Source: Blastocladiella emersonii ATCC 22665
Taxonomy: Eukaryota; Fungi; Blastocladiomycota
Length of the DNA stretch: 64,000 nt
Direction of reading: 5' to 3'
Assembly (NCBI GenBank): GCA_025594325.1
Contig: JANHCV010000003.1
Span: 1,426,001 to 1,490,000, forward strand
This document shows, in pieces, positions 1,526 through 57,340 of the stretch. Made by a program: the position numbers and the translations under genes. The first letter of the stretch is position 1, and every line of letters begins with the position of its first letter. The notes under the pieces are model-generated. The model did no database searches. It was not told where the DNA came from and worked only from the letters and a program-made list of their open reading frames with translations.

Positions 1526-4500
1526 ATGGGTCGCCTCGTCCAGCTCGAGGTCGAGAACTTCAAGTCGTACCGCGGCCGCCATGTCATTGGCCCCTTCAAG
1601 GACCTGACGGCCGTCATCGGGCCCAACGGCTCGGGTGCGTTGCATACTCCTTCGCCGCATTGAGCGCATTTGCGGACCTTGTCTGACGCGACGCACCGGC
1701 CTCCCGCGAGTCTAGGCAAGTCCAACCTCATGGACGCCATCTCGTTCGTGCTCGGCGTGCAGTCGTCGCACCTGCGCTCGACCAACCTCAAGGAGCTCAT
1801 CTACCGCGGGCGCGCGCGGCTCGACGGGGACGGCGCCGAGATCCCGGGCACGTCCGAGTCGGCGACCTCGGCGTCCGTGTCGGCCATGTACGAGGACGAC
1901 GAAGGGAACCAGGTCCGCTTCACGCGCACCATCTCGGGCAGCGGCACCTCCGACTACCGCGTCAACGGCACTCTGACCAAGCGCGAGCCGTACGTGGCGT
2001 ACCTCGAGCGCGAGAACATCCTCGTCAAGGCGCGCAACTTCCTCGTGTTCCAGGGCGACGTCGAGGCCGTCGCCGCGCAGAGCCCGCGCGACCTCGCCCG
2101 CCTCATCGAGCAGGTCTCGGGCTCGCTCGAGCTCAAGGCCCAGTACGACACCCTCAAGGACCAGATGGACCGCGCCATGGAGAACTCGACCCTCGTCTTC
2201 CAGAAGAAGCGCGGCATGCACGCCGAGCTCAAGCAGTACAAGGAGCAAAAGGACGAGGCCGACCGCTTCGACGCCCTCGAGCTCGAGCAGGCCCAGCTCG
2301 TCCTCCAGCAGGCCCTGTGCCGCCTGTACCACATCGAGCAGAAGCTCGCCACGTCCCAGCTCGAGCTCGCCCAGGACGAGGAGAAGCACGCCACCTCCGC
2401 CCAGCTGCGCGCCGACATCGAGCAGAGCCTGCAGGCCGCCAAGCAGGAGGTGGCCACCGCCCAGCGGGACGTGACCCGCCAGGAGCGCCGCGTCGCGCAA
2501 AAGGACCGCGCGCGCGCCGAGAAGGGTCCCGTCCTCGTCCAGCTGAACCAGACCAAGGCCCACGCCGCCGCCAAGGTCGAGAAGCTCGAGGCGCAGATCG
2601 CGAACGTCACCCGCGACAGCGACCGCCACGCCGCGACGCTCGCCGACCTCGAGCAGCAGCTCGCGACCGTCGACCGCGCCCGCGCCAACCTCGACCGCCG
2701 CATCGGCGCCGCCCGCACCCAGCGCGCCGCGCTCGAGGCGCACCTCGACGAGTACCACCGCACCCAGTCGGCCTTCCTCGTCGCCGCCGCCAACAAGCAG
2801 CAGCAGCTCGACTCGCTCGTCCTCGGCACCAAGTCGCGCGCCGACCGCGCCGCGCACGCCCAGGCCACGCTCGAGACCACCGACCGCAAGCTCGCCGCCG
2901 TCGACCAGGAGCGCTCCGCCGCCACCGAGAAGCTCGAGCGCGCCCGCGAGGCGCACGCGGTCGCGGCGCAGGGCCTCCGCGACGTGCAGCAGGAGCTCGC
3001 CCAGGTCGAGTCGCGCGAGGCCAACCTGCGCGCCCAGGAGCAGTCGCTCAACGAAAAGTACGTGCAGCTCACGGCCAAGGTCATGGAGTACAAGCAGGAC
3101 AAGCGGCAGTCCAAGCGCGAGGAGAACAACGCCAAGCTCGTCGGCGAGCTCCAGGCCATGTTCCCGGGAGTCCGCGGTCGGCTTCGCACGCTGTGCCGCA
3201 CGACGCAGTCCAAGTACGACACGGCGTACCACCTGATCCTCGGGCGCAACCTCGACGCCATCGTCACCGACACCCAGGCGACCGCCATCCAGTGCATCAA
3301 GCACATGCGCGAGCAGCGCATGGGCCACGCGCAGTTCCTCCCGCTGCAGGACCTCGTGACCAAGGAGATCCCGCAGTCGCTGCGCACCTTCGCCCACGCG
3401 CGGCCCGCCATCGACGTGCTCCAGTACGAAAAGGATATCGAGCCCGCGGTCCGGTACGCGTGCAGCACCACGCTCGTGTGCGAGACGCTCGCCGTGGCCA
3501 AGCACATCTGCTACGAGCGCGACACGCGCGTTAAGGCCGTGACGCTCGACGGCATTACCATCCACAAGTCGGGCGCCATGTCCGGGTCCGCGTCGTCGGC
3601 CAACGCGGCCAGCGCCACGTCGGCGTGGCAGGCGCAGGACTTTGAGCGCGCCGAGGACGCCCGCAACAAGGTCATCGCCGAGCTGAACCTGCTCTCCAAG
3701 GAGCGCCGCAAGTACATGGACCGCGACGAGCTCCGCGCGCAGCTCACCACGCGCCAGGGCCAGGTCGAGTTCGTCGCCAACATGGTCGCCGGGCTCGAGG
3801 CCAAGGTCGCGGCGCTCACCGACGAGCACCGCGCGCTCACGCAGACGCGCACCACGGCGGCGGCTACCCTCGAGTCGCTCGCCGAGGACATGCAGGACGC
3901 GCACATCGAGGACCTCAAGGACGAGCTCGCCGACATCAAGCGGTCCACGTTCGCGGCGTTCTGCGCGGCTGCGGGCGTCGAGTCGGTCGACGAGTACGAG
4001 CGCGTCGTGCTGCAGACGGTCGCGGACGAGGCGCGCGAGCAGCAGGCGCTCGACGCGCAGCGCGCCACGGTCGAGACCACGCTCGCGTACGAGCGCGAGC
4101 AGCGCGCGTCGCTCGATCGCCGCATCGCGCAGCTGCGCACGTCGCAGGCGACCGAGCAGGCCACGGTCGCGGACCTCGCGGCCAAGGTCGCGGACGTCGA
4201 GGCCGTCATCAACGCGGCGCAGGCCGAGCTCGACGAACTCAACGCCGAGCTGCGCGAGCTCCAGGCCGTGCACCAGGCCAAGGTCGCCGCGGCCAACCTG
4301 CGCAAGCGCCAGCTGCGCGAGACGATCGGTATCATGGAGGGGCTTGAGCGGACGATGATGGAGGCGCGCGGCGAGATCACCAAGCTGCACCACCAGCGGT
4401 TTGCGCAGCTGCGGCGCGCGCGCGTCGAGAACATCCCGATCCGGCTCGCGGCCGGGTCCATGGCCGACCTGCGGCCCGAGGCGAGCGTCGAGGAGTCGCA

Positions 4501-5278
4501 GGACGTCAGCCAGGGGATCGAGATCGACTACTCGGGGCTCAGCGACGAGTACAAGGATCTGGGCGACGCCGCGGCGGCCGACCAGCAGTTCAATGAGCGG
4601 CTCGCGCAGATGGCCGACGACCTCGACCGCATGGCGCCCAACCGCCGTGTGCTCGACAAGATGGCGGGCGTCACGACCAAGGCCAAGCAGACGGACCGCG
4701 AGTTTGACCGCGCCCGCCGCGACGCGCGGTCGGCCAAGGACGAGTTCGAGGCGGTGCACGCGGAGCGGTACTCGCTATTCATGGCCGCCTTCAACCACAT
4801 CTCCGGGTGCATCAACCAGGTGTACAAGGAGCTCACCATGTCGCGCAACTTCCCGGTCGGCGGGACCGCGTACCTGTCGCTCGAGTCGGAGGAGGACCCG
4901 TTCTCGTCGGGCATCAAGTACCACGCGATGCCGCCCATGAAGCGGTTCCGCGACATGGAGCAGCTGTCGGGCGGCGAGAAGACGGTCGCCGCGCTCGCGC
5001 TCCTGTTCGCCATCAACTCGTTCCGCCCCGCGCCCTTCTTTGTGCTTGACGAGGTGGACGCGGCGCTCGACAACGCCAACGTGGCCAAGGTCGCCCGGTA
5101 CGTGACGCAGGCCCGCGCCCGCGACCCCGTGTCTGGCCGCCCCGCGGTTCAATTCATCGTCATCTCGCTCAAGAACACCTTCTACGAGCGCGCCGAGGCC
5201 CTCGTCGGCGTGTACCGCGACAACGAGGATAACTCGTCGAGCTCCATGACGCTGGACCTCGAGCAGTACGAGGCGTGA
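1526..5278 (+). CDS. SMC1: Cohesin subunit SMC1; intron 1635-1715
   Basis: Exon 1 [17 protein letters not shown]...GPNGS splices (GTGCGT...CTAG) to [14 protein letters not shown], restoring Walker A. Also [10 protein letters not shown], hinge region, [33 protein letters not shown] and [12 protein letters not shown] (SMC1-type C-terminal head). Confidence 0.97.
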
Positions 5279-46200: not shown

Positions 46201-46900
46201 CGATTTGGCATTTGACTATGGATTGCCGCGACTCGGCACACCACCGATTTCACCTGCTACTTTCTATGGCTTCCGAAGCGCTCGCTCAACGATCAAATCG
46301 AGTCCGCTTTCGCTAGTTTTATTGCTTCCTCTCGTATTTTTGCCCGGTAGTACCTGCAAGCTTGGTCGCCGAGTCCTTGCTTTTCCCGCTCAGTCGGAGT
46401 TGGAACGTTGCGCTGCTCATGTTCATGCTCTACGCGGCAACCCGCGCATCACCAAGTTTTTCTCATCAGTGGTAGGCTCTGAGCCAAGGCCCAACAACAA
46501 GCTTCCATATTGATTATTCGGCATCACTTGTCATAAACTCAGCAGGCACAGGTGCTATGCCCGCGCTCTTCGTCAGCGGTTGAACAAGCTGACGCCGCGA
46601 GTAAAGCAAAATGATAGGTAACCCGTCGTAAGACGCAAGATATCATTGATTTTTTTCTTCAACCATATTGTATTCTTCGCTGAATTTAACACTTGTGGTG
46701 CACGGAGCGTGCAACGCGTGACGCGCTGCGCCACAGCTGCGCCACAGCGTGACCACGGCGAGCTCTGAGTGGTCGTGGTCCGCACTGCTCATCTTCGCGT
46801 CTCGCATGTCTCGCACTGCGCCTACGGCTCCGTCAGTCGGTCATGTGCCCCTTCGTTTGCACTCGCGGAGTCCTCGCCGCATGCGTGTCACCTCCGATCG

Positions 46901-46907
46901 TATAAAT
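46901..46907 (+). promoter_or_regulatory. Putative TATA box of the Q/A-rich gene
   Basis: TATAAAT about 85 bp upstream of ATG 46991. Confidence 0.5.
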
Positions 46908-46990
46908 CCGGGCCGTTCCCCGCTCTCCCCGCCGCTTCACAACACGCTTGCATACTTTGCTCACGTATCCGACAAACCTACTATCAAAGA

Positions 46991-48175
46991 ATGGGTCGCA
47001 CTCAGCTCCACTCTGCCCAGCGCCAGGCCGTGCACCAGCACCAGGCCCAGACCGCCAACACCAAGTCCGCCATCGCGAACAACAACAACGCGCCCGCTGC
47101 GAAGCAGCAGCAGCAGCAGCAGGCTCGTGTCCAGTCGCCGCAGCTCAAGCAGGCTGCCCCCGCCGCCGCCGCTCAGCAGCAGAAGCAGGCCCCGCAGCAA
47201 GCCCGCGCGCAGTCGGCTCAGCCCAAGCAGGCCGCCGTTCAGCAGCAGCAGGCTCGCGCTCAGTCGCCCCAGCTCAAGCAGCAGCAGCAGGCCTCGGTCG
47301 CCGCCGCTCCCCAGAAGCAGCAGCTCCAGGCCCGTACCCAGTCGGCGGCCGCCGCAGCGCAGGTCTACCGCGCCACGCCCGTGCGCGAGCATCCCGACGA
47401 CGCGTTCCTCTCGGGCGCGTGGATGTTCGACGAGGCCCGCGTCCCGCAGTGGATGGCGCCGCAGCTGCCCAAGGCCCAGCAGCAGCAGGCCCGCGCCGTT
47501 CAGCCCACCGCCGCCGCTCGCGCTCAGTCGCCTCAGCAGCAGCAGCAGCATCACCTCAAGCAGGCGGCCCCCGCTGCCGCCACGCCCGTGAAGCAGCAGG
47601 CGGCCGCTCGCGCGCAGCCTCAGAAGGTCCAGCTCCCGCGCAACGCCGCTGCTGTGATCCCCGTCGGCGCGGTCCGCGCCAAGAACGCGTCGGCCGACGA
47701 CGCCTTCTTCTCGGGCTCGTGGCTCTTTGACTCGGCCGCCGCGCCGCAGTGGCTCCAGTCGCAGCTGCCCGCGCCCAAGGCCCAGCAGGCGCAGGCTCAG
47801 GCTCAGCCTCAGCCTCAGCAGCAGCAGCTCAAGCAGCAGGCCCCCGCTCCTCGCGCGCAGTCGGCCCAGATCAAGCAGGCTGCCGCCCCGACTCAGCAGC
47901 AGCAGGCGCGCGCTCAGTCGCCTCAGCTGAAGCAGGCAGCGCCCGCTCAGCAGGCTGCCGCCGCTCCCCGCGCGCAGTCGGCCCAGCTCAAGCAGGCCGC
48001 TCCTCAGCAGCAGCAGACCCGCGCTCAGTCGCCGCAGCTCAAGCAGGCGCAGCAGCTTCAGAAGCCCCAGCAGCAGCAGATCCAGGTCCAGGCCCAGGCC
48101 CAGAAGCAGCAGGCCCAGAAGCAGCAGGACCAGCGCCGCCCGCAGTCGCCGACCCGCGGCAACAAGCGCGCGTAA
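46991..48175 (+). CDS. 394-aa Q/A/P-rich repeat protein (AQSPQLKQ repeats, two aromatic motifs)
   Basis: ATG 46991 after a TATA box. Many RAQSPQLKQ/RAQSAQLKQ units, plus DDAFLSGAWMFDEARVPQWM and DDAFFSGSWLFDSAAAPQWL. Confidence 0.75.
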   Translation: MGRTQLHSAQRQAVHQHQAQTANTKSAIANNNNAPAAKQQQQQQARVQSPQLKQAAPAAAAQQQKQAPQQARAQSAQPKQAAVQQQQARAQSPQLKQQQQASVAAAPQKQQLQARTQSAAAAAQVYRATPVREHPDDAFLSGAWMFDEARVPQWMAPQLPKAQQQQARAVQPTAAARAQSPQQQQQHHLKQAAPAAATPVKQQAAARAQPQKVQLPRNAAAVIPVGAVRAKNASADDAFFSGSWLFDSAAAPQWLQSQLPAPKAQQAQAQAQPQPQQQQLKQQAPAPRAQSAQIKQAAAPTQQQQARAQSPQLKQAAPAQQAAAAPRAQSAQLKQAAPQQQQTRAQSPQLKQAQQLQKPQQQQIQVQAQAQKQQAQKQQDQRRPQSPTRGNKRA

Positions 48176-48356
48176 CGGCCTCGACGCGTAACGATACCCT
48201 TGACGTGCATCGCGAGGAGCGAAATCGGCTCATGCGATGTTCGACCGATCAATAAAAGACTTCTCCTATCCTTTCGTGTATGAAAGCATTAGTGGACGCG
48301 TCGCGATATCATGTGGCGACCAAGTGACGCGGCGGAGTCAGCTTCATTTGCGCCGG

Positions 48357-48382
48357 GAAGCGACCTAGTCTCGGTGCCAGAC
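48357..48382 (+). repeat. Left TSD (GAAGCGACC) and left TIR of the AcademH element
   Basis: gaagcgacc|tagtctcggtgccagac. Confidence 0.95.
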
Positions 48383-49030
48383 CGTGCGGATCCAGCTGGC
48401 CAGAGCGGTCGCGTGGGGGTCACGTTTCCGGAGTCACATGACCGCGCCCTGCACGGCGCGTCTCTCGTACGGTCTGGTTGCAGTTTGCTCGGCCCAGAAG
48501 CGATCTGCGCTCTAAACCTCCTGCTCCCGCACCCCTTACCCGATCGGCTTTATATGCATATCAATCGACGCGTCTCTGCAAGGGATACACGCTCGTATCA
48601 ATCACAAACCTTGATTCCGCGCCGCTGAGGAGTTAGGCTTGATCGAAGGCCGCGGCCCTGTGGTAGCCGCTCGAGCGCGGGCCCTCGCGGCGCCGCCCTC
48701 ACTCCCCGCGACATGAACTTCACAACTAAGGCAATACGTGAGTACAACAAGCTTCTGGCTTTATTCTGACACCCATGGATGTGAAAAATATGTGGTCGGA
48801 GCGATGATTGAGCGGGGAGGAGCCGCGCGGCCTCGCGCCCCACTCTCAAGGCCCGATCCTTGGGCGGGATAATGAGAATCCGAGCTCCTCCTGATTCATG
48901 AGCATTGAATGCGTCGACCTCGGTCAAGGGGACTGGTGTTGGACGAAGTGATGCGGGCCAAGTCGCGCGGCGCCCACCGCGTTCGCTCTCTCCAATATAG
49001 CTCCACGAATGCACCTCCATGTGAGCTGCT

Positions 49031-52000
49031 ATGCAACCTAACCTATCGCAACCGACATTTATGACCAAGAAATCTCGCAGGTCGACGGCGGCCGCCCCTT
49101 TGGCAAGCTCGTCTGACTCGGCACCGTCCGCCGGGAGTGGAACGAGCGGTGGTCGTCCCCCTGACCCTGTACAGTCGATGGGCGACCGGACGCGACTCGA
49201 CTCGGAGCCTCGTCGATGGTTCTTGCGTCGCATGGTCCAACCGATTCCGCGGGACCCGCCCTGGAAACCTCTTGATCGTCAGTTGCTCGCGAGGGCCGCC
49301 TTGGCGCGTCTCACGCCAGATGACCTTCGCCAGGGCTACATCGACTTGTGTGCGGATCTGGATCCGACTGGTGCGAATACTAAGCTTGCCGTCCTTCCAA
49401 ATGCGACCAAGGAGTCGGTTACTCGCGAGTGGGGTGAGCTGCTTGAGTTGATCGATACATCCATTGACCGCGATCCAGTCGCCGAGGCCATCCCGCTTCT
49501 TCATGCCGAGCTCGAACGATTCAACAAAGCGTCCGCCAACGACCTGAAGCTTGGCACAAAGCTCGACTTTGAGGCGCTCAACGTGGGCGATATCGCCCAG
49601 CGCTGCGCGAACATCTGCCCTCAGCTTTATAGAATACTCAAAGCTATCAGCACCCCTCCGCGTAAACAATCAGCGGCTCGCCCTTTGACGCCAGCTTCTG
49701 ACGAATCGGCTAGTTCCTTCGATTCGGACGAGTCCGACTCGCCGCCCGCGCAATCCAAGCGCGCTGGGACATCCACAATCGTAACGCCCGCCATGCTTTC
49801 GTACATGTTCATTATCACGACGCTCAACTTCCTCCTGCATGGCCACTCCTCTGCGCTGCACCTGGCGCTCGGAATGATGCTCGATTACCTCAGTGGGGCT
49901 TCACGCGCAGTCATTAAAATCCTCAACAAGCTGAAGGTTACAGCGTCCGACTGGTCTAACCATCGGAGCCTCAACCTTGCGGCCAAGTTGAAGCGTACAG
50001 GTGCAGGGTGCGAGAGGAAGGTTGAGCACGATGCACGGAAGGCTGAGGAGATGACGGAGACGGTGATGGACACGGCGAAGGAGGTAGACGCAGAAGGGAG
50101 GAAAGGGTGTATAACGACGGCTAATAGTAGCAGCGATCTAGAACAAAACCAGAGGGAGCGGAGACGCTCGCTTGAGGTGAGCGTGCGACCCCGCGGCGAG
50201 GCAGTCCGCCGGCGGTGAATGGAAGTGTGGCGCCGCCGGCGCGTGCCACTCGCGTGATTGCCCGACGCGTCTCTCGCGGTCGGGCCAGCGTGCGCATGTG
50301 TACTTGAACTGGCCACGAGCGCCAGGGGCGCGGTGAAGAAGCTCCTCGCTGATCCGAAAGCGCTTGTCGTGATTGCCATGGACAATGTCAATGTTTACCA
50401 GTCTCCATCTGAATCGACCTCGATTCACGGTTCGGTCATGCACAATTGGACTCTTGTCCTGTCCTTTGAGGTCCCAAAGCCGTGCGACTTCGCGTTCACG
50501 CCCGAGCAGCTCTCGCTTCGAAATGCCCTGCTTCGCGCACACGATACGCCGGCTATGCGAACGCCTGGCTCCCCTACTTACTCTCTCAAGGCCATTCTGG
50601 AGCCTCCGGCAGACCGCTCGGCCCGCCTTCAGCGCGCTCGGCGCGAAATTGCGCATTACATTTCGAGCAATGATGGGCCAGCGGCCGACCTTGGCCACGC
50701 TCGGGTTCTTGGCCACGCTGCCTTTGCGCTTCCCGCCAATACAGCTCCCGCAGTCACACTTCCGGTTGTGATCCGCGTGGTCGAGATTCTTAACCTGAAC
50801 GAAGGCGAGCGGTCTGGCATGATCAACGTGTTGGACGAGGTGCTGCGACTCGTTGGTCGCCACCCGACGCAGCCCATCTTTGGTGATGACGGAACCTTTC
50901 TCATGCAATGGGCCGCAAAGGCCGCTCGACAGTACTGCGGCTTTGGAGGGGATTTGAGCACCATTGTGCCCATCACCTCGGACTGGCACACGATGTTCAA
51001 CTTCGTTGCTGCGATTGTGAACCGCTTCTGGGGTGAGCCCACCGACCAGCTGTCCATCTCGTGGTACAAACAGCTTACTCAGCGCAAGGAACTCAAACGT
51101 GCCAAGATTACGTATCACGCCGGCATGCGGATCATCGACGAGCTGGTACGCCTCCCTGAGCTGCTGAAACTAGGAACAGGTTGGATATTGACATGTGCTT
51201 GTACGTCCCCGAAAGCTTGAGTGTCATTTGCGTGCGCTCTTCAAGCTTGAGCTTGCCGAGCTCAAGCGTGCTCGAGGTCTGACTGACTCGGACCCGTACA
51301 AGCTCTCTGTCAACGATGCTGCTGTTGTGATCGACAAGATCATGACCAACTGGGTGTACTATAAAACACCGTACGTCTTGCTCGCGCATTTCAGCTTTCG
51401 TGGAACCCACTAATCAACGTCCCGTCTTTCATTTAGCGCCGATCTCCATTTCTACAGCAATAATCCCCTCGCGTCGAAGCGTGGTTCCGGCTCCTCGAGC
51501 AAGGAAACCATTCCCATGCCCGCGAGTGCCCAGCAACACATTTTTCTTGGCGAGTTCTTGCAGGCCGCGCTCCTCCTCCGCGATTTCAGCAAAACGGTGC
51601 GCGCTGGCGACGGTCCCGCCCTGGTTCGGCTCCAGCGACCGCTTCTCGCCGCGTTTCTTGGCTCGGACCACAAGGTTTACCAGCGCGCCATCATGAGCGA
51701 GCTCCGTGGTCAGGCTGGCGCCTATTCCGAGTACGACCGCCTGCTCTCCACTTACCTCCGCTCTGTGCATTCCGCCAAATCGGAATCGGGCACCTGTCGC
51801 CCGATTGATCACCACGTCGAGGAACACGTCCGTGTTGTCAAGATCGGGGTCAAGAGCGCAGGCGCGAACGTTACCTTTGACAGCGCGGCCAATTTGGTCC
51901 ACGCCATGCCCAAGCTTAAGGCCATCGAGTCGACGTTCAACAACGTGTGCGCGATTTCTCCACCGTCCGCTTACCATAAGCGTGCTCGCGACAAGGCCCG

Positions 52001-52310
52001 TGCTCCGGCTGTCGACCTGATCTATTCGCGCCTTATCGACCCGAAACCCATGCACGATGGTACCGTCAAGGCGTTCAGCATCATTGGGCGGCAGCGAATG
52101 GGAGACGCCAGCCTCATGGTAGATCTCTGGGACTACTCGGACGTGACGAAGAAGCATCCCATGCCGGGGTCGAGTCTTGCATCTGTTGCTGCGGGGCAAG
52201 GCGAGCAGAGTAGCACCAACTCGGACGAGCTCCTCGCTTTCCCTCACCCCGAGGAGGAAATCATTGAAATCGAGTTGTCTGGGCTCGACAAGGATAGCGA
52301 CGAATTTTAA
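49031..52310 (+). CDS. Academ-type (DUF6589-like) DDE transposase; introns ~50008-50325 (uncertain), 51146-51215, 51371-51436
   Basis: Motifs in order: LGMMLDYLSGASRAVIKILNKL, VIAMDNVN, IFGDDGT, SDWHTMFN and PIDHHVEEHVRVVK, matching the DN.N / GD / xxH / D..xE pattern I recall for Academ transposases. The two 3' introns have canonical GTACG...AG ends and restore the frame. Confidence 0.78.
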
Positions 52311-52515
52311 GAGCAATACATATGAATTTTCCATCGTTCCGCGGACGCGCGCGCCTCGGCGAGTGAAGTGAGAAGTGTCTCGCAGCAGTCACGTGTTTGA
52401 TCGACGCGTCTCGCACGCGCACGAACCGAGACACTCGGTCGCAAAAATTAACTCAAACTCGACGAATCAAGAATAAATGATGATAGAAGCCTTTTATTTG
52501 GGCTAGATGCATGGC

Positions 52516-55261
52516 TCACGCGCCAGGTGGCGCGGGATGGTGGTGCTGGGTTGCTTGGTCCGCGGCAGCGCCGTGCGTAAACGGCGGCGCTTGAGCTTGA
52601 GTATTGCCGATCGGAGTTTGCTGAGGAGTAGCAACGTTGATCCCGTGCACGACGGACAAGTACCGAGCCATTGCGGGCGAAAAGTCGATGGCGGGGAAGC
52701 GAGGAGTTGGCGGGGGAGACGTCGGATAGCCAGAACTAGCCGAAATATACGGAGCTGGAGCTGAGGCAGGATGGGGAGCTGCGAATTGTTGAGGATACGG
52801 ATGGGCGGGAAGCGTGCCTGCATGAGAAGGAATCCAGGTCGCAGAGGGTGCAGCTTGAGGAAGCGGGATGTTCGTGGGAGCAAAGTGGGGCGCGTATCCT
52901 GGAGCTGGAGCGGGGTTTGAGACTGCGGGCGACAGTGACGGCGGCGTGGAGAGTGGAACTGGCACCGATAGTTGCGGCTCAGGAGCAATCGGATCGTCAA
53001 CATCCATGCGGTCGACGACCTGGGTCGCTTTAGGCTGGGCTTTGCCTCCCCGCTTGCCCTTGCCCGTTCGCGTGGTCGGCTGCGTTGTTGCAACCTCGGT
53101 TGGCTGTGATGTAGCAGCCTTTTTGGTGGCCTTCTTAGGCACGACCTTGGGCAACGCCCCGGTGTAAGCCAGCCGAATGCGCTCGAGAAGGCGTCCCACA
53201 TGGTCAGGTACGAAAAGCGAAGAATCTGGAGTCAAATAGTCGCGGGTCAGGATATCTGCATCAAACGCGGGATTCACGACGGCCAGGACATGCGCATTGG
53301 CGGTTATCCGTTCCAGTTCCTTGTCCGACAAAAAGTCGGCGACATTAAACATGTTGAGACCGTTGCAGTCGGACAACTCAATGCCAAGCTCGTTTGTCAG
53401 GTCAACGATGCTCGAAAAGAAATGGCGGAGCGATTCCAACCCCTTGAGCTTTCGCCCAGCCACTCGAGAACGAGGAGCCTTTGGTTTTGGTGCAGGGGCG
53501 GATGATGGAGGTGGAGGAAGCGAATCGAACGAGCGATGCAGAGCATCTTCGCTTGCAACATGGAAGTTGTAAATCGGAGATATGCGCGGATGGCCATGGG
53601 TCGAGCAGCAAATGTTCGGGTCAAGATGATCGCTGGACGGAACTCCATTGATCATTTCAAGCAAGACGGAACGTGCGCAAACAGGGGAGCTCTCGCTGGA
53701 GTTAGAAGGTTGCTCAAGATCCAGAGGCAGAGCGGGAGCAGAAACCGCAAGATCAGAGGCAACTGCATCCGCGGGCTCAGAGACAAGATGCGCGGGCTCA
53801 GACTCGAGGTTTGGACGCTTCTTTGGTGGCGGGGCGTCCTCGTTTGGAGCGCCGATGCCATGGCCCTGGAAGAAGGCGTCAACAACAAAGTCCATCGGTT
53901 TGTTGCTGGTTGAAGTAGAGGAGCTGACCGCTGGCGGGGCTGCACTAGCCGCGCTGCGAGCAGCATAGTACATGATGAACTCGGCCGGGTTTCCATCGCG
54001 GCCTGCGCGGCCCATGATCTGCATCGCCTCCTCCCCGGATGGCGTATTACCGATCGAAACGACACAGCGGACGTTGGGAACATGGACACCGGTGCCAAAC
54101 GCGTGCGTTGAGAAAAGAATTCGCGGTTGAACATGCTCAACGTTGCTTGTCATGTCGTTGTACACCGATTCGTGGTGCGCGGAATTGAGATCGCCGTGGT
54201 AATGCGCGAAAAGCGGGGCCGCGGTCGGGTTCAGCGCACACATGTAGCCGTAGAAGGCAACGACAAGTAACGGTTCGTACAAGTACACGAGAATGCGCGG
54301 TTTGCTGGCCGCGTTCGCAGGGTTGAGAGACATGACGTAGTCGCGCAGCCACTCGTAATGCTACGCGCGACTCAGTGGTCAGTGAATGAGCGATGCGTTG
54401 CGATGTCGCGCAGACGCATACGTAAGAGCCCGGATCCCGAATGGTCGTCGCATGCTTGGAGCGGACGAGACGAATGTAAATCTCGGGGCGGTCAAGCGGA
54501 CCGCGAACAAGCACGTAATCGTCACTGCCAAACTAAAGCTGAGTTCGAGTGATGTTGTGCTCCAGCTTTTTCCCAAGAGTGGCCGACATGATGAGTACAG
54601 GCGCATTGGGGAACAGCGAGCGGGCCTTGAACAGTTGCTTGCACTCGGGCCGGAACTGCGAGGTAGAATCGCCCCTAGTGAGCGAGAAGAACGTTCAGCA
54701 TCGTGTTCATCGTGCCGATGCGTTCCGAACGACGAGAACGCAGGCTCAGACTGCGTACCAGATCGCGAAGAGGTGCGCCTCATCAAGGACGATGAGGCCC
54801 ACGCGAGTGGCGGGTCGCTCCGAGATCCAAGCGGCGTGGAAACTGTTCACGTAGTACTCGGGCGTCATGAAGGCAATCCGGACCTCACCATTAAACAGTC
54901 GAGCCAGGGACGTCGCACGGTCGCTCGGTGCAACGTCCGAGTGAAACGATGCAGCCTCGATGCCCTTCGCGCGCGTCTGACTCAGCTGATCTCGAAGAAG
55001 CGAGCGGTAAGGGGACAAGACCACGACGATCTCTCCATCAAGCAGCTGCGCCATCGCGTGGAAGATGAGCGACTTGCCGAACCCGGTCCGCGCAGTGAGG
55101 ACCACGCTACGGCCCTCGAGCAGGTGCGAGAGAACCTGCTCCTGCTCGAGTCGAGGTTCGTCGATACCCAGCGAGAGGACGGTCTCGACTATCTGGTCAT
55201 GGTGCGGGAGCAGGCCCTCCGGTCGGGCCTGCGCCGCGGATTCCATTGCATTAGCTGACAT
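52516..55261 (-). pseudogene. RecQ-like SF2 helicase of the element, with an in-frame TAG at 54533-54535; introns 54675-54758 and 54361-54421
   Basis: ARTGFGKS (I), VLSPYRSLLRDQ (Ia), TPE, LDEAH (II), spliced WGDSTSQFRPE, IMSAT (III), STHAFGTGVH (V), QIMGRAGRDG (VI), Cys cluster CARSVLL...ICCSTH and a Pro-rich tail. The start codon could alternatively be ~55466. Confidence 0.88.
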
Positions 55262-55687
55262 GGCAGTGCGATAGAGTGCGTTTCGACTTTCATGATGCAG
55301 TAGGAGAGCGGGAGGAGACGGGCGAAGTGGGCGGGGCAGTCGGGCGAGCATCGACGCAGCGGGCCCGACCCTAGCCGAATTATCTCTCGCGACTCCCGCG
55401 AGTCCCGCGCGGGACTTGACCCCTTGCAACTGACATGGATCGATAGGTTGCATCGAGTACTCCATTTTATTAGTGTACGCCAAGGGCGATAGGTCAGGCG
55501 GTTGGGGAGCTAGAGCGCGATCAGAGCGCGCGGGGGGGGGGGGGGTTTCGGGCGCGCGAAAGCACAGGCGAGGCGTGGCGCCACGCAAACTGCTACCAGA
55601 CTCCAGCACCGTCGATCCGAACGAGCGCCCGCGGGTCACGCGGCGGCGATTGACTTGACAACGCCTCGAAGGTCACGTTGCCCTGGA

Positions 55688-55713
55688 GTCTGGCACCGAG
55701 ACTAGAAGCGACC
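55688..55713 (-). repeat. Right TIR and right TSD of the AcademH element
   Basis: gtctggcaccgagacta|gaagcgacc. Confidence 0.95.
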
Positions 55714-56699
55714 GTCGTCGTTGGCTTCCTTGGCCGTTCCTCTCACGGCTCACCACCACTCGCCATGAATCTGATGAACGAGTCGATGCAACGGACATGG
55801 AATCACGCGATGACGCTGACTTGCTGCATTATGGCCCTCACGCTTCCAAGTGCTTCTCAGTGGGTCGGCCGAACCGCACTGCACTTCACCCGCTTGAACG
55901 AAGCTAGCGGGCGGATCCTCGACCCTCTCTCATGGTCGACCCGAATAGAATCGACCCGACGGCGATGACTTGCCGTTGATACATCAGACAGACGTGCGTC
56001 TCGAGCGGCCGACTTGGTGCTTGGTGCGGCTGCCGCTCCAGAACGATTTCCAAATCCATCTTGCCCGATGTCCTTCGTGAGTCTCGAAGTTATTCCCAAA
56101 CTACTTGACTCGGACTGCAGCAAAGATTTCGACACAGTCGATGAGAACCTAATGGCCTGTTTCGATCAGCGCGCAGTCCGTGCTGATGTGCTTGTTGCAT
56201 CAGCCGGTGTCGCCGCTCTTGATGCAAAGTTGTCGATGATCCCCGAGGTATGGGCGGGTTGGCTGCCAGCGCGGAATCGATGTTTAAACGTACCTGGCTA
56301 CGCCATGGCCGCGACCAGGCCGAAATCTGGGCTCAAGGACACGCATTACACGTGTTCGTTCATTTTAGGAGAGGGCAACCAAGCAGCGGGCGAGTCGACT
56401 GCACAAATGGAGATTTTACATATTGGCTCATGCATGCCGAGAGCGCAGTGCAATGAAGGACGCGGTTGCACTGGGCGTTGGCGTCCTGTGAGAGCTGCGC
56501 TTCATGCACAACATAATGCAGCAAGTCAAGTTCATCGCGTGATTACATGGTCGTTGCATCGACTCGTTCATCAGATTCATGGCGAGTGGTGGTGAGCCGT
56601 GAGAGGAACGGCCAAGGAAGCCAACGACGACGGTCGCTTCCCGGTGCGAACGAAGCTGTCTCCGCCGCGTCACTACTCCTCGGCTAGCACGCTACTCCG

Positions 56700-57340
56700 G
56701 GGTCGAGTACCGAAGCGGCCAAGACAAGGCTCCGAGCAGTGACGATGGCGAGTCGTACAATTAGGACGAGTCGCTCATGGCCGTCGAGGAGAACGCCGCC
56801 TTTCAGCCAGCACCCGCCACTAAGTCGCCCAAGGTCTCGTCGCAGCTCGAGTCGCAGCGGCAGGAGCCCATGGACGCCTTCGACCTGCTCAGCGCCCTCT
56901 TTGGCCGCCCCGACTCGCCCCGCTCGTACACCTCCCGCGCTGACCGCGACCGCCCTCATCACCCTGCCGCCGCTCAGCGCCAGCACGCGGCCGCCATCGC
57001 CGCCGCGCGCGAGCGGGAAGAAACGGAACGTCGCCGCCGTCGCCAGCGCGCCATGGAGCTCGCGGCCGCGCAGGAGCGCGAGCGCCAGTACGCCGAGTAT
57101 CTCCGCGAGCTCGAGCGCCAGCGCCGCCGCGAACAGCAGCAGCTCGAACGCGAGCGCGAGGAGCGCGAGTACCGCCGTGCCCTGACCGCCGAGCGCCACC
57201 GTCGCCAGCAACAGCGCGAGGCCGCGGCTATTGAAATGATGATGGACCCGTTCGCGGCCATGTGCCGCGGGAGCAGCTACCGCCGCCAGCGCGCGGCGCC
57301 GGTCCAGTATGTTTCGACGATGCCTGCATGGGCGTGGTAA
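56700..57340 (+). pseudogene. 5'-truncated paralog of the PB1 gene (C-terminal half only)
   Basis: Co-linear with ~37780-38395 (RADRDRPHHPA, QRAMELAAAQERERQYAEY, EREREEREYRRALTAER, ..WAW stop). No PB1 domain. In-frame TAG at 56762-56764 just before ATG 56777. Confidence 0.75.

Follow-up and report, generated by a model that had tools for sequence, protein, structure and literature searches.

A helicase-carrying DNA transposon, probably of the AcademH type, in the blastoclad fungus Blastocladiella emersonii

What is a helicase gene doing inside a cut-and-paste transposon, and to which lineage does a transposon so equipped belong? These questions are raised by an element in the genome of Blastocladiella emersonii ATCC 22665 (Blastocladiomycota; assembly GCA_025594325.1). 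In the 64-kb stretch that we analyzed (64,000 nucleotides, here called the window, whose coordinates are used throughout), this element occupies positions 48366-55704, a span of 7,339 bp, and carries a gene for a transposase of the Pfam family DUF6589 beside one for a RecQ-like helicase of superfamily 2 (SF2). We are fairly confident that the family behind it is young and multi-copy and consists of cut-and-paste DNA transposons of the AcademH type that carry a helicase gene, this element being one copy. The membership of the element in AcademH, which we likewise regard as probable, is suggested by features described for the group: terminal inverted repeats (TIRs) at both ends, a 9-bp target-site duplication (TSD), and an SF2 helicase gene next to the transposase gene. 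An initial annotation had already read the locus as a complete AcademH-type element. The TIRs, the 9-bp TSD, and the pairing of a DDE-like DUF6589 transposase with a RecQ-like helicase sustain the type, whereas the copy is not complete.

The boundaries of the element can be placed to the base. The left TIR, TAGTCTCGGTGCCAGAC (48366-48382, + strand), and the right TIR (55688-55704, - strand) are both 17 bp long, and the right is the exact reverse complement of the left, with no mismatch. With as many as three mismatches allowed, the TIR matches the window at just two places, both of them element ends, for a chance expectation of 0.18; the exact boundaries and perfect repeats proposed earlier are thus verified, and the repeats form the sole such pair in the window. 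Directly outside them stand two identical 9-bp copies of GAAGCGACC (48357-48365 and 55705-55713), such that the left junction reads ...GGGAAGCGACC followed by TAGTCTCGGTGCCAGAC... and the right junction ...GTCTGGCACCGAGACTA followed by GAAGCGACCGTC....

The target site itself can be seen without the element. A repeat scan identified a 163-bp inverted repeat whose first arm is split by the element (48323-48365 plus 55705-55833) and whose second arm (56512-56674), about 800 bp from the element, crosses the insertion point uninterrupted and contains a single GAAGCGACC (56632-56640). Both the scan and an alignment found the two flanks of the element complementary to this one unbroken stretch. Because the window holds its own paralogous empty site, insertion and duplication of 9 bp are directly demonstrated rather than deduced, and an empty-site comparison, suggested earlier for other strains, could be made inside the same window. 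The inverted-repeat structure must predate the element, since the element splits its arm. The insertion is recent, as had been proposed, with ends and TSD alike still perfect.

The transposase gene (49031-52310, + strand) was located by its Pfam match. Its predicted exons are 49031-49980 joined with 50311-51145, 51216-51370, and 51437-52310, and its two predicted introns, 51146-51215 and 51371-51436, have GT..AG ends. Once these introns and a 330-bp interruption described below are removed, the model is an open frame of 937 aa. A search for DUF6589, also suggested earlier, returned matches on two open reading frames (ORFs) of the + strand, at 7.8e-11 (profile positions 68-200) and 1.7e-5 (positions 271-410 of 410), which are colinear with the profile. 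The Pfam scan of the element ORFs gave no named transposase domain besides DUF6589, including the MULE (Mutator-like element) and Transposase_mut families, and no XPG nuclease domain.

This transposase is highly divergent. When its 320-aa ORF was compared by phmmer with 1.84 billion representative proteins, a single match was obtained at E <= 0.001, the protein AMAG_20110 of Allomyces macrogynus, which itself matches DUF6589 at 9.6e-27. At the corresponding locus (GG745366.1:34514-56387), the DUF6589 gene is followed by remnants of a RecQ-like helicase on the opposite strand; these match three parts of the window helicase at 34-44% identity, the identity over both proteins being 33-44%, and one of them is annotated as a 164-aa "DEAD (weak)" protein (L001 10001-14628, GG745366.1). 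The Allomyces locus thus resembles the window element in having a DUF6589 gene with opposite-strand coding for a RecQ-like helicase, and differs from it in that the helicase is fragmentary and that no convincing TIR or TSD was found around it. Since the layout is the same, the pairing and its orientation are old within blastoclads, and the fragmentary helicase suggests that the Allomyces locus is probably an old, decayed copy. The two transposases have in common the motifs GMI.VLDE, IF.D.G, SDWH..FN, and D..VE..VR..K. On the basis of these motifs, the enzyme would be a DDE transposase with the candidate triad D338, D509, and E775/776 of the 937-aa model, residues that are partly conserved in the Allomyces protein. 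Nothing useful came from word-indexed protein searches with the helicase C-terminal lobe and the Allomyces DUF6589 protein, and a metagenome scan with the motifs GMI[NG]VLDE and SDWH[TA][ML]FN yielded no relative.

Tail to tail with the transposase gene and 205 bp from it lies the helicase gene (52516-55465, - strand, 934 codons), recognized by Pfam and by sequence matches to solved structures. It is predicted to consist of three exons (55465-54759, 54674-54422, and 54360-52516) separated by two GT..AG introns (54758-54675, 84 nt; 54421-54361, 61 nt). Pfam finds DEAD (1e-18) and Helicase_C (1e-9) on two ORFs of the - strand, in keeping with the initial annotation, which had described a DDE-type transposase gene and a RecQ-like helicase gene lying tail to tail. 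Both helicase lobes are best matched by RecQ-family structures, led by Escherichia coli RecQ (1oyw, at 7e-16 and 2.9e-8) and followed by WRN, RECQ4, RECQ1, RECQ5, and BLM, and the nearest neighbors in language-model features are RecQ-type DNA 3'-5' helicases. The core has the motifs expected of a RecQ-type motor: GFGKS (motif I), DEAH (II), SAT (III), and RAGRDG (VI). It therefore shares with the RecQ family both RecA-like lobes and motifs I, II, III, and VI. Unlike these helicases, it is borne by a transposon, has a long low-complexity C-terminal half, and shows no detected RQC, HRDC, or zinc-binding domain; in the 605-aa C-terminal ORF, Pfam at E <= 0.1 recorded none of the three beyond Helicase_C. 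A C-x-R-x-x-L-L...C-C stretch recalls the zinc-binding region, by eye only. Because neither RQC nor HRDC was detected, we apply the term RecQ-like to the motor core only. The C-terminal part of about 470 aa (52516-53900, - strand) is rich in P, S, A, and Q and of low complexity, and has no domain match.

The earlier description of the element as complete did not survive closer inspection of these genes. A 325-bp high-copy repeat, recognized from contig depth and loose contig ends, sits inside the transposase ORF (49986-50310), and the reading frame as it stands in the window meets a stop at codon 396. The insert is flanked by a 5-bp TSD, GGCCA (49981-49985 and 50311-50315), and ends in weak 8-bp inverted repeats, AGTTGAAG and CTTGAACT; the whole interruption (49981-50310, 330 bp) carries in-frame stop codons. 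The helicase gene contains an in-frame TAG at codon 283 (54535-54533, - strand), between motif III and a conserved ...RPEIY... block, and apart from this codon its 934-codon model is open. With an insert in one gene and a nonsense codon in the other, the window copy makes neither full protein. Its ends stay perfect despite the disablement of both genes.

Other copies of the family appear to have been spared this damage. We compared positions 49800-55790 with Logan contigs from four sequencing runs of one sample. Contigs at the main depth of the family join 49980 straight to 50311, with GGCCA fitting either side of the joint, and the frame is preserved without the 330 bp (...SLNLA|ATSARGAV...). 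Over the skipped stretch the contig depth is about seven times that of the rest of the element, and loose ends at 49986 lead into many different flanks. At position 54535, the contigs of each of the four runs show G, not A, at full depth, which restores CAG (Gln) on the coding strand. Since the sample yields contigs that are free of the insert and that have CAG, intact sibling copies exist. Approximately eight further fixed differences separate the window copy from the dominant contigs over 5.9 kb, different runs picked different variants at a few sites, and a version about 88% alike to the window copy is also present; these variants point to several near-identical copies and at least one older relative. 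The insert and the nonsense codon are private to the window copy or to a minority of copies. Each may have arisen before or after the last jump of this copy.

Two other accounts of the 330-bp interruption were considered and rejected. An intron is argued against by its ends (GT..AG and CT..AC borders are absent in all six registers that the skip allows), by its size, by its depth, and by its many different flanks. Native sequence lost from other copies through GGCCA microhomology would not explain why the segment is found at higher depth in other contexts or why its removal reopens the frame. As a separate observation, a G homopolymer of 12 bases close to the right end of the element (55526-55543; a C-run on the helicase strand, in the 5' region of that gene) is shorter by one, three, or seven bases among the contigs.

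How well does such an element fit what has been described of AcademH? According to PMC10045372, Academ includes AcademH, which encodes a helicase and generates a TSD of 9 or 10 bp, and AcademX, which has an XPG nuclease and a TSD of 3-4 bp. PMC10799480 reports that AcademH helicases carry DEAD and Helicase_C domains and that the group is found at low copy number in animals and in three fungal phyla, Basidiomycota, Ascomycota, and Mucoromycota. The window element shares with AcademH its TIR-bounded structure, its possession of one gene for a putative DDE transposase and another for an SF2 helicase with DEAD and Helicase_C domains, its 9-bp TSD, its low copy number, and its length of several kilobases; the likeness is one of description (Kojima 2020, as cited in PMC10045372 and PMC10799480). 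It differs from AcademH in that its host phylum lies outside the quoted range and that its transposase is so divergent that a pairwise search finds the Allomyces relative only. Blastocladiomycota is not named in the AcademH range as given in the publications that we found. Placed within AcademH, the family is a new and very divergent one of a kind already described.

Its distance from other groups can be stated more simply. AcademX would share the transposase superfamily, if DUF6589 is the Academ transposase, and differs in having an XPG nuclease and a 3-4-bp TSD where the window element has a helicase, a 9-bp TSD, and no XPG domain. In Helitrons a Rep/HUH domain is joined to a Pif1-type SF1 helicase, and TIRs and TSDs are lacking; Kolobok elements generate TTAA TSDs. 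Both Helitron and KolobokH resemble the window element in carrying a helicase of their own. The window element departs from Helitron in its TIRs, its TSD, its RecQ-like helicase, and its lack of a Helitron domain, and from KolobokH in that the TTAA duplication of Kolobok is not seen.

Several points weigh against assigning the element to AcademH and to a family with intact members. The equation of DUF6589 with the Academ transposase is circumstantial. It draws on the architecture, the length of the TSD, and the distribution among taxa, DUF6589 clusters being most frequent in Mollusca, Mucoromycota, and Basidiomycota, three groups in which Academ is reported to be abundant. A further circumstantial point is that in 2017 no Pfam family existed for the Academ nuclease. 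We found no source in the literature that makes the equation, and the supplements of fungal transposable-element papers contained neither Academ nor DUF6589 data. The exhaustive phmmer search of the 1.84 billion representatives gave no transposase relative outside blastoclads, which places this lineage far from typical members of the family. Sequence searches against solved structures found no relevant PDB match for the transposase, and single-sequence AlphaFold2 models were unusable, with a pLDDT of 35 for a window transposase exon and 37 for the Allomyces protein. Furthermore, all four introns (61-84 nt, GT..AG) are predicted from sequence alone, and the read evidence comes entirely from one sample, probably the source of the assembly itself, and from contigs, which lose rare variants.

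A rival reading is that the DUF6589 elements of blastoclads belong to a deep lineage of their own, as yet without a name, of DDE transposons that carry a helicase and resemble AcademH in layout and TSD length only. A single homologue at E <= 0.001, word-based searches and a metagenome scan that gave nothing else, Academ nucleases that had no Pfam match in 2017, and the lack of a source that we could find linking DUF6589 to Academ would all be expected of such a lineage. In addition, the named language-model clusters nearest to the transposase after DUF6589 are P-element/THAP9 transposases, a weak lead at a score of 0.65. Against this stand a DUF6589 profile match that is well above the cut-off on one exon and colinear on a second, a combination of 9-bp TSD and SF2 helicase that is the published signature of AcademH, and a taxonomic spread of DUF6589 that parallels that of Academ. 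We therefore regard a separate lineage as unlikely. Far less credible is the notion that this is a Mutator-like or other element with a 9-bp TSD that captured a RecQ gene from its host. MULEs do make 9-bp TSDs and frequently capture host genes, but DUF6589 is the only transposase match in the element, with no sign of MULE or Transposase_mut, and a host-derived RecQ gene sits poorly with a helicase that has no detectable RQC or HRDC domain. Allomyces has the same pairing, with about 34% identity in each of the two genes, which indicates that the association of transposase and helicase is old and no recent capture; on balance such an origin is extremely improbable.

A different kind of doubt concerns the state of the window copy, which would be functional if assembly or polishing of a multi-copy repeat had introduced the TAG by mistake and if the 330-bp segment were spliced out or tolerated. 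The unanimous CAG at 54535, at full depth in the contig sets of all four short-read runs, could be taken in this sense, as could the length of the segment, which is a multiple of three. However, a minority copy with TAG would not show in contigs, because contigs drop rare variants, such that the CAG reading is compatible with a real nonsense codon in this copy. Moreover, none of the six skip registers offers the GT..AG or CT..AC borders to compare with predicted introns of 61-84 nt with GT..AG ends, and the segment has in-frame stops, roughly sevenfold depth, and many different contig flanks. A functional window copy is thus very unlikely, and we return to the AcademH-type element with both genes disabled and intact siblings elsewhere in the genome.

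The ends of this element may bear on the role of its helicase. Beyond the TIRs the two ends diverge and then, about 107 nt in, share an inverted block, GTCTGGT(T/A)GCAGTTTGC; on the left the subterminal block GTCTGGTTGCAGTTTGCTCGGC (48472-48493) has an inverted match of 86% at 55580-55601. Each end can form a stem. On the left (48377-48477), CCAGACCGTGCG (48377-48388) pairs with CGTACGGTCTGG (48466-48477), the two being 77 nt apart; on the right (55596-55693), CCAGACTCCAG (55596-55606) pairs with CTGGAGTCTGG (55683-55693) at 100% complementarity over a distance of 76 nt. Both stems draw the hexamer CCAGAC from the TIR, and the adjoining five or six bases are specific to each end and matched there by their own complement. 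The right-end fold has z scores of -3.5 and -3.2, and none of 200 shuffled sequences folds as well; the left-end fold does not stand out, with a z score of only -1.1, and its stem is nonetheless part of the minimum-free-energy fold. The stems are known from one copy of the element.

Extrapolating from known DDE cut-and-paste elements, it seems sensible that the transposase would bind the 17-bp TIR together with the subterminal GTCTGG blocks, excise the element, and join it into a target at a 9-nt staggered cut. In the present case, the element inserted into one arm of the older 163-bp inverted-repeat structure and duplicated 9 bp of target. The window copy would presumably depend on intact siblings for the proteins needed to move. 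AcademH elements are poorly characterized, and to our knowledge no role has been established for the helicase in any of them. As a guess that we offer with low confidence, the helicase may act on structured DNA ends or on intermediates of strand transfer or gap repair, and the 11-12-bp stem at each end could be a plausible substrate. A more far-reaching proposal, to which we give just a slim chance, would set the blastoclad elements apart as a deep lineage of DDE transposons that carry a helicase, in which recognition of the ends depends on DNA structure and the RecQ-like helicase opens or extrudes the 11-12-bp stems for the transposase. If true, stem opening would give the AcademH-type helicase a testable job.

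For such work the locus offers ends defined to the base, a verified 9-bp TSD, two gene models, and evidence of intact, near-identical siblings. B. emersonii is a culturable model zoosporic fungus, and a transposition assay that includes or omits the helicase could start from this element. The window copy also illustrates how an element dies, by repeat insertion and a nonsense codon, with its mobilizable ends kept. At present the family cannot be seen in protein databases, its genes being uncalled in the public annotation. That annotation of GCA_025594325.1 places no gene anywhere inside the element (window about 48175-56777; L002 12431-21033), contrary to the earlier expectation that a pipeline would annotate a pair of ordinary genes here, and the element's proteins are absent from protein databases because none was called.

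The surroundings of the element and the spacer between its genes also deserve description. The spacer (52311-52515) holds a palindrome, GTGTCTCG...CGAGACAC, at 52376-52435, and contigs with loose ends at 52373-52376 and 52410-52423 indicate that its short motif occurs in many other genomic contexts. The core of this palindrome, CACGTG.TTG..CGACGCGTCTC, recurs within the 325-bp insert (50251-50273), and it may be a genome-wide motif that is terminator-like or repeat-derived. The inverted-repeat structure that received the element (48323-48365 plus 55705-56674) is about 1 kb long, with 163-bp arms that are 94% alike and 678 bp between them. Contigs that break off at 55705 carry a further variant of the arm, and this structure is therefore probably a repeat family of its own, foldback or MITE-like (miniature inverted-repeat transposable element); no clear TSD was seen flanking it.

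Rfam and tRNA scans over 48000-57000 found nothing. Across 48001-56000, the G+C content of the element is 57-60%, compared with 62-75% for most of the surrounding genome. Upstream of the element lies a repetitive ORF rich in Q and A (46769-48175, + strand), built of 33-63-nt repeat units, that stops 190 bp short of the left end. A neighboring protease gene assigns the window to contig JANHCV010000003.1 of GCA_025594325.1. Far from the element, an intronless SMC1 ORF (1670-5278) agrees with the earlier supposition of a blastoclad host: its product is 100% identical to SMC1 of B. emersonii ATCC 22665, and the next-best matches are from Catenaria (57%) and Allomyces arbusculus (53%).

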